This document shows, in pieces, positions 43,601-49,605 of a stretch of 64,000 nucleotides of DNA (position 1 is the first letter of the stretch; every line of letters begins with the position of its first letter). The translations under genes and the position numbers were made by a program. The notes below the pieces were generated by a model that was not told where the DNA came from, did no database searches, and saw only the letters and a list, made by a program, of their open reading frames with translations. Origin of the DNA: Tubulanus polymorphus (taxonomy: Eukaryota > Animalia > Nemertea); NCBI RefSeq assembly GCF_964204645.1, contig NC_134031.1:16665807-16729806 (forward strand), in the 5' to 3' direction.

Positions 43601-44476
43601 AAGATTAGAATGTATTGTTTGTTAATGACAGTCAAATTTAAGTTATTGTTTTTAGAAAAATAAACTAAAATTCGCTGTATTTAAAACTGCTGATTTTGAA
43701 TTTACTGAGATTTATTTTCTACTGGGAAGCTGCATGAAACCTCGGTCAACTCGGACAAAATCTTCAGGACAGTTTCTATACGCACGACGTTTCTTGGTCC
43801 GACCAGGGAAGTGTGATGAGATGGAATACGGACGCTTTTAATTGCCGGATGTAGGCTATTCAATTCAGCCCGTACATCAAAGGTTACCGCAACAGCAGTA
43901 AGCTACGCTTATCGAGTGTGTGTTACCAGCTGAACACCAGTCAACATCAACTTTGATTCGGTCGCAGAACAACCCGCAATAGTTTTAGCCCGATAAATGT
44001 TCTGCGATCGATACTACGCATGCGCACTGCAGTTCATTGAACCACGTGGAAGTGGCTGTGTATAAACATATTTTTCTTTAGAAAATCGGTTGAAATTCAA
44101 CAATTTCTCGTAAAATTTGTCCAAAAAGGTATGTATTTTTATTCTTCTATATCTCCGAAACCCGGAATCGGAACATTAAGTGTTTATATTGTGATTAAAG
44201 TCTGTTTTTATGTGTTAAACATATGTTTTTGCCAGTTCGTTCCGATTCCGGGTTTAGCGTTATTTGGGCATTGAAGATGTCAAATATTTCGGCCCAGACT
44301 CGCGCAGCTTTCGTTTCTGACGTCATGTTGCTATGTTACGACACAGACATATACATGAAGTATGATCTTTAAAATGTGTATTTACTACATAATAATGTTA
44401 CTTAATAACGCTTACATTAGGCCTACAAATTATTGTCCCCCATATAAACCAAGTTGCCTAAATAGCATCAGCAATC

Positions 44477-45406
44477 TCATTTAATTAACCTTTTCTTGTT
44501 TTTAGTCATGGATCTTTGTCGATTGTGTGGAAAAAATGCGAAACCTCCGGATCGTCGTCCTATCGATAAAAATAATTTCAAAAGCCATGTGAAGGAGTTG
44601 TTCAACATTGATTTTGATGATGATACTGAACAGTACCCGATATATATCTGTAATATGTGTCGTGTCAAATTACAAAAATGGCGTAAGAACAAAAACGTTA
44701 AAAAAACTGTCCCTGTGACTATCACAACATGAAACTTTGCCCACATTTTATCCAAATCTTTCGCAGTGCTTATGTGAATGGCGGAACATAATGTATCTTG
44801 AATTTTTGTAAACCACTGGTTAATTCCAAGTCTGGACGGCGACGTATTTGTAGTCAAAATTTTATCGATCGATTTTCCATTATGTACTGCTGCCATTCCA
44901 TTTGAACTGAATTTAAATACTCGATGGTTAATCACTTCAGTCATAGCCTTTTCCAAATATATAGTGTTCCTGCGAAAATAATAATAATGATTATTATTTT
45001 AACATGTACTTATCTGGATTTTTTATATTATGTTTATATATTATTTTCTGTATTCGTTTATTATTTTATAACCTAAAAGGATTGTATTGATTATAAAAAT
45101 AAATGTAAAAAATACCTGTATGTGTGTTTTCTCGTGTTCAGATCGCAGTCTCTGGTCAGCTGAGCCTGAGAAGTACCTATATGAAAAAGAAAAGGAAAGA
45201 ATAAAGTGCCTGCAATTAGGTGGAAACTATTCCGATATTACATTGATTCAAAAGGAATAACACTCACTAGAATCGGCCGAATTAGTTGATCCTGATCCAG
45301 AGGATTCCCGTAATATTTCCGTATCGATCTGAACCAATTCGTCACTATCAAAGAATAGTTCGTCAAAATCGTCATCATTTATAATTTCGTTGACAACCGT
45401 TGCCAT
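44477..45406 (-). pseudogene. second, convergent transposon-borne spliced ORF of unknown function
   Basis: Exons 45406-45268, 45176-45116 and 44969-44477 have GT-AG borders and join in frame (phases 1 and 2): MATVVNEIINDDDFDELFFDSDEL...RKHTYR NTIYLEKAMTEVINHRVF...DKMWAKFH. Confidence 0.55.
44508..44732 (+). pseudogene. truncated transposon protein with an N-terminal C2C2 zinc finger (RAG1-N/Chapaev-like or zf-AD-like)
   Basis: MDLCRLCG..x17..VKELFNIDFDDDTEQYPIYICNMCRVKL. Preceded by a polypyrimidine-TAG acceptor (44504-44505), with an upstream donor AAG|GTATGT at 44129. Confidence 0.6.
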
Positions 45407-45520
45407 TTTAATACAGCGGAAAGAACCGATATCACGATTGATAAAACACTATATCCGTCTGAAGCGATGTAGAGAGAATCGCACAATGATAACGAAAAAG
45501 TCCAAAAATGTTAGTAGTTT

Positions 45521-45558
45521 ATTCAACGTTTCGTCTATGTCCTAATAGTCATCTTCAG
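45521..45558 (-). ncRNA. minimal type-I hammerhead motif in a Penelope-like fragment nested in the transposon
   Basis: Minus strand: CTGAAGA-T-GACTAT-taggac-ATAGAC-GAAA-CGTT-GAAT, with palindromic AACGTT stem III. Confidence 0.55.
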
Positions 45559-46116
45559 AAATAATGAATACTACAGAAATTATGAGAGATATATACAATC
45601 CAGAGACAAAGAGACTAATTCAAGTAATCAGAGATGATACAAACTAAAGGAAAATTAACGTAGAAACAGTTACACGCTAAAACAGATTAAAGAGAAGCAG
45701 TTAAGAGACAGACTAGGGGGCACTTAAATTTAAGACAATTGTGAATACAAGTTGATCGACTAAAATTGATGAGGGGAAATCAGGTGTTGAGTTTAACCAG
45801 TTTACAGAGGAATTTTTATATAAGTTTATTATGGGATGAAAAACCGATATTCGGAAACAACTGAATTATTACGGAGATTCCCGATCTCGCTGGTTATCGC
45901 TTATCGGCGCGTTACGTAACAAAGCGCTCGCCGACGAACCGTTATCGGCTTTAGGGCAATTACAACGCACATTCGACAAGAGCTGCACAATAGCGTCCGT
46001 ATTCCATCTCATCACACTTCCCTGGTCCGACTAAGTCCGAGTTGGCCGAGGTTTTCTGTATGGTATAAATTCCTTCTAAAGAAACAACAGGTATTTGAGG
46101 TCGGAGGAACTATCTA

Positions 46117-46291
46117 AAGAGGAACCTCGTTATAACTGGCTCGGATACAACGATTCATCGGATATAACAAATATAGAATTTCGTCCAAAGTAAGAAAATT
46201 TAGATTATTTCATATTGGATAACGAACTATCGGTTGTAACGAACATATTTTCTGGTCCCGTGAAGTTTGCTGTAACGAGGTTGTATTTTGG
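46117..46291. mobile_element. Tigger-like MITE (degenerate)
   Basis: GAACCTCGTTATAAC...GTAACGAGGTT ends, with internal CGGATATAAC/GTTGTAACG repeats. Confidence 0.55.
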
Positions 46292-46381
46292 TACAGTCCC
46301 GAACCACCATCCTGAAAAACTAGACGATCTTGCAAAAATGGAGAACTCGCCATGATTGCCACGGAAATTGATTAGAAGGAT

Positions 46382-46416
46382 CAGGGAAGTGTGATGTGAC
46401 TCATCACACTTCCCTG
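46382..46416. mobile_element. 35-bp TIR-only remnant (probable excision footprint) of the 43804 element family
   Basis: CAGGGAAGTGTGATGTG-A-CTCATCACACTTCCCTG, flanked by the direct 7-bp repeat GAAGGAT (46375-46381 and 46417-46423). Confidence 0.85.
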
Positions 46417-47119
46417 GAAGGATAAACTTGACAATCCGGACACATTTGCCCTCAGTGTTTGTTTGAATCACATTCCACGCATAACATTAATGAGGACACC
46501 TTGGCGAGCTCTAGTAAATGACATTTGCGGCAAATGACTAGGTTTTTAGAATTGCAGTCTGGTTCTTCTTTTCATGCAAGATTATCAAAGCGGAAAGACG
46601 CGAACGAACAACACTCGGAAACTTTAAGTGCCATATTTCCATTCAAGAGAGACGTCTGAAAAAAAATATACCGCTTTAAATAGCGCTAAAAGCACGACCT
46701 TTTATAAAATAAACACTATATAAGCTGGCTTTTGATCGTTTCCTAGACAGTACCTCGATTTTAATTCGCCGAAAGTTCATAGTGTTCAAACGGATTTTCT
46801 ATTCCAAAGAACAGCACCATAACGCCTATGAATCCCTCATTTCTTCCTCAATTTCCGCAAATTGTCATTATATAACTAGCATTCTTTAATGAGGTCATGT
46901 CTGACCGTCTACCGGTCAGCCACGCCAAACATTTATCGGAACAAGAACATCTTAAAGTAAGGACAACCTAACGTTATTGGCACGGATAACACGAATGAAA
47001 ATATTATCAGAACTTACACGTATATTCACGTTTATTCAACAACTATAAAATAACAGGTAGTTAGTTTTGAACTTAGTTTTGATAAATATATAAACAAATG
47101 TAGATGCGCAAATATAAAT

Positions 47120-49605
47120 TTAATGTTTTCGTTTAGTCTTATAGCCATGAAAACGAACTTGTTTCTTGGGCTGTCCTAATTTTCCAGACGGCGTCGGACA
47201 AATCGAGGTATCGAGCGTTATTTCGTCGCTCTCATTTTGATATATCTCGATGTTTTCGCTGATATCGCTGTCACTGTGGTGATTCTCTTCGTGTGGAGTA
47301 GTAAGAGCGATCTCGTCTGCTGTTGGAGTTGTAAGCGGCTCGGGGACGGTAAACTTCTTCGCCGGTGTTTCTCCCGTTGTTTTGTTGAATAAACCTGGAA
47401 ATATTTCGTACGCGTTGCTACTAAGTTCGAGACAAGTTGGAACTGAATCATCGAGAGCCAGTAACAGTTCTTCAGCATTAGCTACTATTTTCTGTGATTT
47501 TAGATGCGCTTCGTTGGACTGAACGTCTGCATCAGTAGAGATATCGTTGATGTCCGAAGACAGTACTTCGTGTGGACTCAACTCTTCACTGGAGTTCCCG
47601 ACCACGGCTTCCTTATTTTCAACTTCCGATGATTCCGCCATTGCCTCAATACAGTCCATCGTTTTCATAGAATGGCCAGCTGGTATTTTGTCATCTTCCG
47701 TGTTTTCCTGCACGTTTTCGCACGACGACACATTTGACGTCTGGTGGTCGTCGTTGTTAAGTTGCGAAAGGTCGAGAGAAGGAATTTCATCCAGCACTTT
47801 ATTAACAGATTTCTCAATCATGTTGTCCACGAATATTTCTACCGAAGGCGAGGATGTCGGTTTTACTTCAGTCGTTTTTGCGTCTTCGTCGCTGAAAGTC
47901 ACGAATTCGAAATCATCGAGATCTGGTACACGTGGTATTTGAACCACGTGATGAGTCTTCTCGTCTGTCTCGTGGCTTTCTACCTTCCCTGTACGGTCAG
48001 TGACGATGATCGACGCTGTTAATTCAACTTCTTCTGTACTTTCTATTTTCTCGTTTTCTAGAATGTTAGGTTTCCTTTTCAGTGAAAAATCCATGTTCTG
48101 TGTACAAGAGTCACTAACTGTAATGATAGCGTTGGTTTGATGAGAATTTCTACGCGGTTCGGATGAATGCGAGAATTGTTCGGTAACAATCGCCGAGGTT
48201 TTTCCGTGAAACATCGTCGTTGTCATCTGTCCTCCACGTTCGTGACTTCGATTGCGAGATGCTTTACGCATCGCTTGCAAAATCTCCTGACGATCTTTGT
48301 CTTTGAAGGCTATTTCCAAACTATTCGACTTTTGAAAAAACGCATTTTCGCTAGTTCGCCTCAGGTGCTCCAGCCAGAAGTCGTGTGGATTGTCGGTTGA
48401 TGAATACGTTCCGCGCGATGGACGCCTATTTGGATCTTGTTGGGTATACATACAATACGGAGTGGTAAGATTTTGAGCTTTCACTTTTCTAGAGCTGTAT
48501 TGATCGTAGTGATTTTTGAAATCCGAATGAAAATCAGGCGCGTGGACAAGGAATTTTTTCTCAAGCGGAGGAAGCCGAGGTGATGCGTTTAGTTGCGAGA
48601 AATCATTCGTGTTGTCCGTTGTTCGTTTGACAAAATTAGAATTTTCTGGCGACGAAGGCGGCGTCAAACCTGAAACGAAGATTACTTTTCATGAAATATT
48701 GGAATGAAAATTGTTCGCATAGGTTTAATGAGCTTTTAAGTTCTATAAATGACATTATATTGATCACCGGCAACTAAAAGATTTCCTATTGATCTGCAAT
48801 GCATATCGTCTGTAGTGCCTTAGTAGCATTTCAACAACGCTTTCTTCGATGCATACGTTTTTAGGTATACTGCCATACCACGTACCAGTAAGACTAGCGG
48901 CATTATCTTCAAGAAATTCTTCCATTAAGATAACTTACTTTCTGGTCGACCCCTTATCACAATCGGGGTTTTTCGATCGGTTGTGACATCGCGATCCGAT
49001 TGCGTTGTTTTGCGTTTCTTCTTTCGTTTCATTCGTTTTTTGCTCTTTTGTTGTCTCCTTTGCTTGCCGCAGTCGGAGTCGGAAACGTCGGCCTCGTCCG
49101 AGCAAGTGGCAGGGGTGACACTACCGCGCCGAGGTTTTCTCGAATCGCGCTGCGATGAATCCAGACGTAGCCCGGGTTGATTTTGGTACCTGCTGGTTAG
49201 CTCAGGACTTGATCTGCTAGTTGACGCATCGCGACTGCTGCTCTGGATCGAAGATTCCTCCGTTTCCGTATAACTCATATCTTTGTTAGTTACACTCTTA
49301 TCTGGCATTTTTTCTCCCGAAGGAGCGGCAACTCGTGGACGCCGCTTACTCCTTCGTTTCTGTTTGCGACCGGCGCTTTGTAATCCGGTTCTCGATTTCA
49401 GACGACCTCTCGTTTCTTTGGAACGTTTCGTTGTTTTCACCACAGGATGTCCGCCAGATAATCCCAATTCATCCGCGGACGGGGAACGATATCCTTCCAA
49501 AAACGCGTTCTCTTTCGTTTCCGGTCGAAGTCCAGTCGACTGTAAACAGGTATCTTGTTTCGTTTCGACACGGTGTCTTCGTTGTCTGTGGTTTGTCCGC
49601 GTCAT
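47120..49605 (-). CDS. uncharacterised low-complexity protein (~738 aa): basic N-terminal half, acidic C-terminal half, C-terminal RVxF
   Basis: Exons 49605-48939 and 48669-47120 join in frame (phase 1; GTAAGT donor, TTCAG acceptor). The 515-codon and 226-codon open frames are too long for chance in AT-rich DNA. An upstream exon probably ends at 50096 (TAG|GTAAG). Confidence 0.72.

Follow-up and report, generated by a model that had tools for sequence, protein, structure and literature searches.

A probable P-type excision footprint beside a polymorphic P-superfamily transposon of Tubulanus polymorphus, and its counterparts across the genome

INTRODUCTION

How does a short palindrome come to lie inside a target-site duplication (TSD) of its own, close to a transposon with the same ends? 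The question is raised by 35 bp at positions 46382-46416 of a 64,000-nucleotide stretch of the Tubulanus polymorphus genome, referred to here as the window. Read directly in the window, the palindrome is flanked on both sides by a perfect 7-bp TSD, GAAGGAT. The original prediction for this locus was that two 17-nt arms separated by a single nucleotide are what remained of a terminal inverted repeat (TIR) when a P-type transposase excised the transposon, and that the site may have been the donor of a local jump.

What sets P-element transposition apart is a staggered cut of 17 nt. Made by the P transposase, this unusually long stagger generates two non-complementary 3′ overhangs (PMC7776569; bioRxiv 10.1101/2022.05.24.493293). 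The Drosophila P element has 31-bp inverted repeats and 8-bp TSDs, and it undergoes local hopping (PMC7776569). Here we analyze the remnant in the window, the transposon family to which its arms belong, and the remnants of the same kind elsewhere in the genome.

RESULTS

Structure of the remnant at 46382

Comparison with the ends of the transposon resolves the palindrome into three parts, all read on the forward strand. The left arm (46382-46396) is exactly the first 15 nt of the TIR, the right arm (46400-46416) is exactly the last 17 nt of the transposon, and between them lie three nucleotides of filler, TGA (46397-46399). The two copies of GAAGGAT, at 46375-46381 and 46417-46423, are identical. 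The earlier reading of the same letters as 17+1+17 with one mismatch, at position 16, is equivalent to the data, but the mismatch is better read as the TGA filler. This filler appears to duplicate the TGA located just upstream in GTGATG, in the manner of templated end joining. The distance to the element at 43804-46024 is 357-358 bp, so that both the predicted spacing of about 360 bp and the placement of the remnant within its own TSD were confirmed.

The 15-nt end word occurs four times in the window, where 0.08 occurrences would be expected by chance. When the entire window was scanned for a palindrome between direct repeats of 7-8 bp, the remnant was the sole match, and the same scan found no such structure in shuffled window sequence. 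A chance palindrome was rejected as the origin of the remnant on these two grounds. The junction of a circle with abutted ends was also considered and rejected, because the outer tips of the repeats point outwards, beside the TSDs.

Our allele data come from two public runs of a single study, X1 and X2, both in the form of contigs; the source sample may be one of them. A contig of 7,380 bp in run X1 spans 46253-47300 with zero differences, and the remnant is thus not an artefact of assembly. At 46382 run X1 carries the remnant, the sole allele among the alignments listed, and run X2 barely covers the site. The exact 35-mer is present in a single copy in the genome.

The neighbouring element and its family

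The element at 43804-46024 is an internally deleted copy of 2221 bp on the forward strand, bounded by perfect 33-bp TIRs (43804-43836 and 45992-46024) and, from sequence comparison, by the TSD GTCCGAC (43797-43803 and 46025-46031). A contig of run X1 joins position 43794 to 46023, skipping exactly the element and one copy of the TSD. This is a clean empty allele, and the element is therefore polymorphic and hence recent. About nine copies of exactly 2221 bp exist in the genome. Counting family ends gives 51 exact left and 45 exact right, corresponding to about 50 elements, most of which are deletion derivatives of 2152-2221 bp from a 5.9-kb element. The first 327 bp are 98-100% identical between copies.

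Full-length copies are about 5.9 kb long, an example being that of 5910 bp at G000:C6:18193703-18199612. That copy is without a matching TSD (CTTGGAT on the left and TTTAAAC on the right), and may be recombinant or chimeric. The exon that remains in the window copy (44508-44729, forward strand) encodes a zf-AD-like zinc finger, and corresponds to the start of a 613-aa ORF in the full-length copies. In a full-length copy with the same ends this ORF matches the TNP-like RNase H N domain (PF21787, E 2.4e-26). It gives a weak match to RNaseH_C (E 1.7e-4, under the curated cut-off) and another to the P-element HTH. In an alignment with 6P5A, the structure of the Drosophila P transposase (E 1.8e-7), it conserves the FDEMKV and VSD motifs, and its Atlas neighbours are without exception P/THAP9-like clusters. 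For the zf-AD domain (PF07776, residues 3-60), where the cut-off is 28 bits, the window copy scores 31.9 and the full copy 26.9. No Pfam match to a THAP domain, at the N terminus or elsewhere, was found in the window or full copies. The GTP-binding insertion domain (PF21788) gave no match in ORF1 or in a convergent 322-aa ORF piece, and neither Pfam nor PDB has a match for the convergent ORF of 345 aa in the full-length copy. By these similarities the full-length copies encode a transposase of the P-element/THAP9 type, in line with the P-type chemistry proposed for the family; that its mechanism is in every respect that of Drosophila P is an assumption.

Some further features surround the element. 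Outside the TSD it is flanked by a 20-nt inverted repeat (43737-43756 and 46035-46054) that is 95% complementary, and it seems to have inserted into a palindrome or into another inverted-repeat element. Two segments stand out in the summed contig depth of run X1. One is within the element (45444-45711, depth 72,000-165,000) and the other lies between it and the remnant (46114-46381, depth 6,000-17,000), compared with about 1,500 over the remainder of the element and about 31 in unique flanks. Both segments belong to far more abundant repeat families. Numerous loose contig ends in X1 mark boundaries near 46140 and 46282.

A genome-wide census of remnants

How general are such remnants? The 268-Mb genome from which the window is taken was searched with exact-match patterns, which mutated remnants and asymmetric ones (with one arm <10 nt) escape. 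Exact 15-nt arms with 0-30 nt between them gave 64 matches, with zero matches for a separation of 31-60 nt and zero for 61-90 nt. Relaxing the arms to an exact 10 nt, with 0-9 nt between, gave 60 further matches. A sister subfamily that has A instead of G at position 12 of the repeat gave four matches with 15-nt arms and 0-30 nt between. The reversed-pattern controls gave zero matches in every search. After dropping one nested match, one counted inside a longer remnant, and copies in duplicated segments, about 123 independent remnants are left. Since nothing is found with 31-90 nt between the arms, the remnants are a discrete class.

The following analysis refers to 108 independent remnants extracted with short flanks (150 bp), with 10 of the 60 short-arm remnants lying outside this set. 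A perfect 7-bp TSD is present in 89, and 100 have a TSD with at most one mismatch; an 8-bp TSD was found in none of the 108. Together with the GTCCGAC of the element in the window, this places the family within the 7-8 bp typical of the P superfamily. The remnants are 22-58 nt in total length, mainly 26-36 nt, and comprise 54 distinct sequences, the most frequent of which occurs seven times. Filler is absent from 71 of them, and amounts to 1-25 nt in the others.

A few remnants recur at distances of 1.6-25 kb with identical flanks as well as identical sequence, i.e. G000:C1:10910592 and 10912184, G000:C5:23256833 and 23274308, and G000:C11:13788963, 13814341 and 13827229. The shared flanks indicate that these scars were carried by segmental or tandem duplications that took place later. 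The sister subfamily contributes at least 22 remnants (e.g. G000:C5:17485448 and G000:C7:3641149). Its arms, like those of the main family, extend to 18 nt, with one 19-nt reading, by eye, among its four longer remnants. Perfect TSDs are few in this subfamily (7 of 18 analyzed remnants), which points to an older wave of excision. A compound remnant of 55 nt (G000:C3:19866189-19866243) has a 20-nt partial copy of the end preceding a normal 35-nt scar; the extra copy looks like templated re-synthesis in the course of repair.

The retained arms end at 18 nt

The lengths of the arms were counted in the 108 remnants wherever they could be assigned unambiguously, with a floor of 10 nt set by the search. 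Short arms of 10, 11, 12, 13 and 14 nt number 4, 5, 13, 3 and 2, respectively. There are 26 arms of 15 nt, 36 of 16 nt, 16 of 17 nt and 25 of 18 nt, followed by just one of 19 nt, one of 20 nt and none longer than 20 nt. The TIR is perfect up to 33 nt, so that retention of the repeat ends abruptly at position 18. The genome-wide test of the P-type model therefore came out as the original prediction had it, with a sharp stop and a discrete class of remnant; the arm lengths do not continue smoothly past the limit, as they would under random internal deletion. Its expectation that arms would be limited to 17 nt or less was right as to the existence of a limit, but the value is 18 nt.

Is position 18 really retained, and position 19 not? 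Arms of 18 nt are commoner than those of 17 nt (25 versus 16), and often precede unrelated filler, as in the arrangements 18+C+18, 18+7+18 and 18+9+18. Position 18 is thus truly kept, and the limit is not 17. All other calls of 19 nt are ambiguous, since an opposite arm of 16 or 18 nt begins with T, the same base as that at position 19. About 49 arms are at least 18 nt long, and none of them belongs to a join of the form 19+16, 19+18 or 19+19, which would need an overhang of 19 nt. Taken together with the retention of position 18, this leads us to infer from the repair products that the 5′ cut would lie 18 nt inside the end of the element. The long staggered donor cleavage that characterizes the P superfamily is in this way seen indirectly, through what repair has left behind.

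Junctions and fillers

The arms are joined in a blunt-like manner or with 1-2 nt of homology. The two overhangs would share one sequence, which makes annealing along their length impossible, and the observed types of join are consistent with this. AT is the sole self-complementary dinucleotide available in the overhangs. Sharing of AT between arms of 14+14 nt accounts for a recurrent 26-mer, and a recurrent 36-mer is accounted for either by sharing of AT or equally by a plain 18+18 join. The recurrent remnant sequences are thus plain or microhomology joins. Fillers often copy sequence of the repeat, examples being CA, CACTTC and CACACTTCACA, and one further filler comprises CACTTCCCTG plus the first three bases of its own flank, copied from the junction of end and flank. 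Fillers copied from the repeat mark repair synthesis, not transposition.

Target sites and a possible local hop

The 89 intact sites define a palindromic target motif, TTR-GTnnnAC-nAA. T occupies position -3 in 73 of the 89 and A position +3 in 76; within the TSD, 73 sites have T as the second base and 66 have A as the sixth. The target of the Drosophila P element is a 14-bp palindrome, ATRGTCCGGACWAT, i.e. ATR-GTCCGGAC-WAT; the motif of the present family resembles it and is one base shorter (PMC2577343). The GTCCGAC at the element in the window nearly equals the Drosophila core.

One target has been used twice. At G000:C8:4799037-4801313 the order is GTCAAAC, a 35-bp remnant, GTCAAAC, a 2221-bp element and GTCAAAC, and this is the sole site in the genome with two ends facing each other across 30 nt or less. 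Such double use of a 7-bp target could result from local re-insertion, or from the kind of target hotspot known for the P element (PMC2577343).

Could the remnant at 46382 be the donor site of the nearby element? For two of the 108 remnants the nearest element end is less than 500 bp away, where 0.038 would be expected (P about 0.001 from 20,000 permutations with 99 ends). These are the remnant at 46382 and that on contig 8, which is 42 bp from its element, start to start. Leaving out the index case there is one compared with 0.038 expected, and P is roughly 0.04. There is no excess of remnants near elements over the range 50-500 kb (3 versus 2.4, 6 versus 4.7 and 22 versus 20 expected). The short-range excess and the polymorphic neighbour are no more than suggestive of a local hop. 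That the scar at 46382 and the polymorphic 2.2-kb copy at 43804 record one cut-and-paste event, landing 2.6 kb away on the same chromosome, we regard as a tentative idea that is probably wrong. If it were true, a donor scar and the new insertion would have been captured on one haplotype.

DISCUSSION

The remnant at 46382 is very probably a P-type excision footprint, the product of a long staggered cut, read as 18 nt, followed by end joining. The reading draws on the structure of the remnant, the genome-wide limit on arm length, the TSDs and the P-type transposase, and it upholds the original interpretation of the locus. A copy of the P-superfamily transposon would formerly have occupied 46382, inserted at the target GAAGGAT. 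The transposase would have cut the 3′ strand at each junction of transposon and flank, with the cut in the 5′ strand falling about 18 nt into each 33-bp TIR. The flanks would thereby have retained two identical, non-complementary 3′ overhangs, each comprising 18 nt of transposon sequence. End joining by the host would then have trimmed these to 15 and 17 nt, added three nucleotides and sealed the break, with both copies of the 7-bp TSD left in place. The scar would be a dead end, since it has no subterminal sequences and, if it were cut 18 nt in from each of its ends, no duplex would remain.

Other origins for the remnants have to be weighed against this. Gap repair could have been aborted, such that copying from the sister chromatid halted after 10-18 nt at both ends and the short strands were joined. 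P-type families do yield many internal deletions, seen here as the 2152-2221-bp derivatives of the 5.9-kb element, and the templated fillers indicate that some synthesis took place. Yet aborted copying predicts a continuous distribution of arm lengths, and the arms of both sides in fact break off sharply at 18 nt, with zero remnants having 31-90 nt between 15-nt arms compared with 64 having 0-30 nt; we consider this origin very unlikely. It is slightly less probable still that the remnants are footprints whose 18-nt limit was set not by a staggered cut but by a host protein or the transposase, bound to the outer half of the repeat and blocking resection. Such a protection model had been put forward for Drosophila P at a time when the 17-nt cleavage was yet to be mapped, and the footprints taken alone fit a protected end and a pre-cut overhang equally well. 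Against it, the limit is near-equal to that of Drosophila P both in length and in relative position (18 of 33 nt here, and 17 of 31 nt there), and protection is the less economical explanation because biochemical mapping has demonstrated the staggered cut for an enzyme to which this transposase is homologous.

The least probable of the origins considered is that the remnants are mini-MITEs, i.e. a tiny non-autonomous element made of two repeat tips that is itself mobile and has reached some 120 sites by its own transposition. Every remnant does have its own 7-bp TSD, and certain sequences are found at several loci, in up to seven copies. But a high-copy family of identical units is not what the census returned. 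With 54 distinct sequences among 108 remnants, lengths of 22-58 nt and no subterminal sequence kept, these do not have the character of a MITE. Most of the forms with filler are rare (at most four copies) or unique, the recurrent forms are those expected of simple or microhomology joins, and the 35-mer in the window occurs once in the genome. Amplification would leave the arm limit at 18-19 nt unexplained. Moreover, cuts 18 nt from each end of a unit of at most 36 bp would leave no double-stranded element, and Drosophila P is mobile only with terminal stretches of at least 138 and 216 bp (PMC1562414).

The P-type footprint can be compared with those of well-studied systems. As with Drosophila P, the outer half of both repeats is kept between intact TSDs, the overhangs would be identical and not complementary, the arms meet in blunt-like joins or through 1-2 nt of homology, and some fillers are templated. 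The RNase H core of the family transposase is homologous to that of the Drosophila enzyme, and the target is palindromic, with GT and AC at the edges of the TSD and reuse of one target site in one case. The two differ in the limit (18 nt here and 17 in Drosophila), in the TSD (7 bp and 8 bp), in the inverted repeat (33 bp and 31 bp) and in the N-terminal DNA-binding domain, which is zf-AD-like here and THAP in Drosophila. They differ also in the way in which the cut is known, from natural genomic scars in this family and from biochemistry in Drosophila.

Excision by cut-and-paste followed by host repair is shared with the hAT, Transib/RAG, piggyBac and Tc1/mariner transposons. The hAT and Transib/RAG enzymes form hairpins on the flanking DNA and the repeats are removed entirely, and excision of Tc1/mariner elements leaves 2-3 nt. 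None of these four groups is known to leave 15-18 nt of each end. Excision by piggyBac is described as seamless (PMC7351741). Closer relatives are Galileo, the Anopheles element AgaP and zebrafish Pdre2/THAP9, which have the transposase family in common with the present element; Galileo also has a 7-bp TSD (PMC3573991). A term search in papers on Galileo, Anopheles P and zebrafish THAP9/Pdre2 returned neither an excision footprint nor a stagger length, and in those parts of the P-superfamily literature that were covered the 17-nt stagger is quoted from Drosophila only (PMC7776569).

With about 120 scars, compared with about 50 elements that survive, end-joined excision has been a major fate of this family. 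The roughly 120 repair junctions provide a natural record for a divergent relative of P, distinct in its DNA-binding domain and with a TSD of 7 bp, and they suggest that the long stagger has been conserved in this element, where we read it as 18 nt. That value is a concrete and testable prediction for the enzyme. In the same way genomic scars could give the cleavage stagger of other P/THAP9-type transposases at single-nucleotide resolution, from sequence alone.
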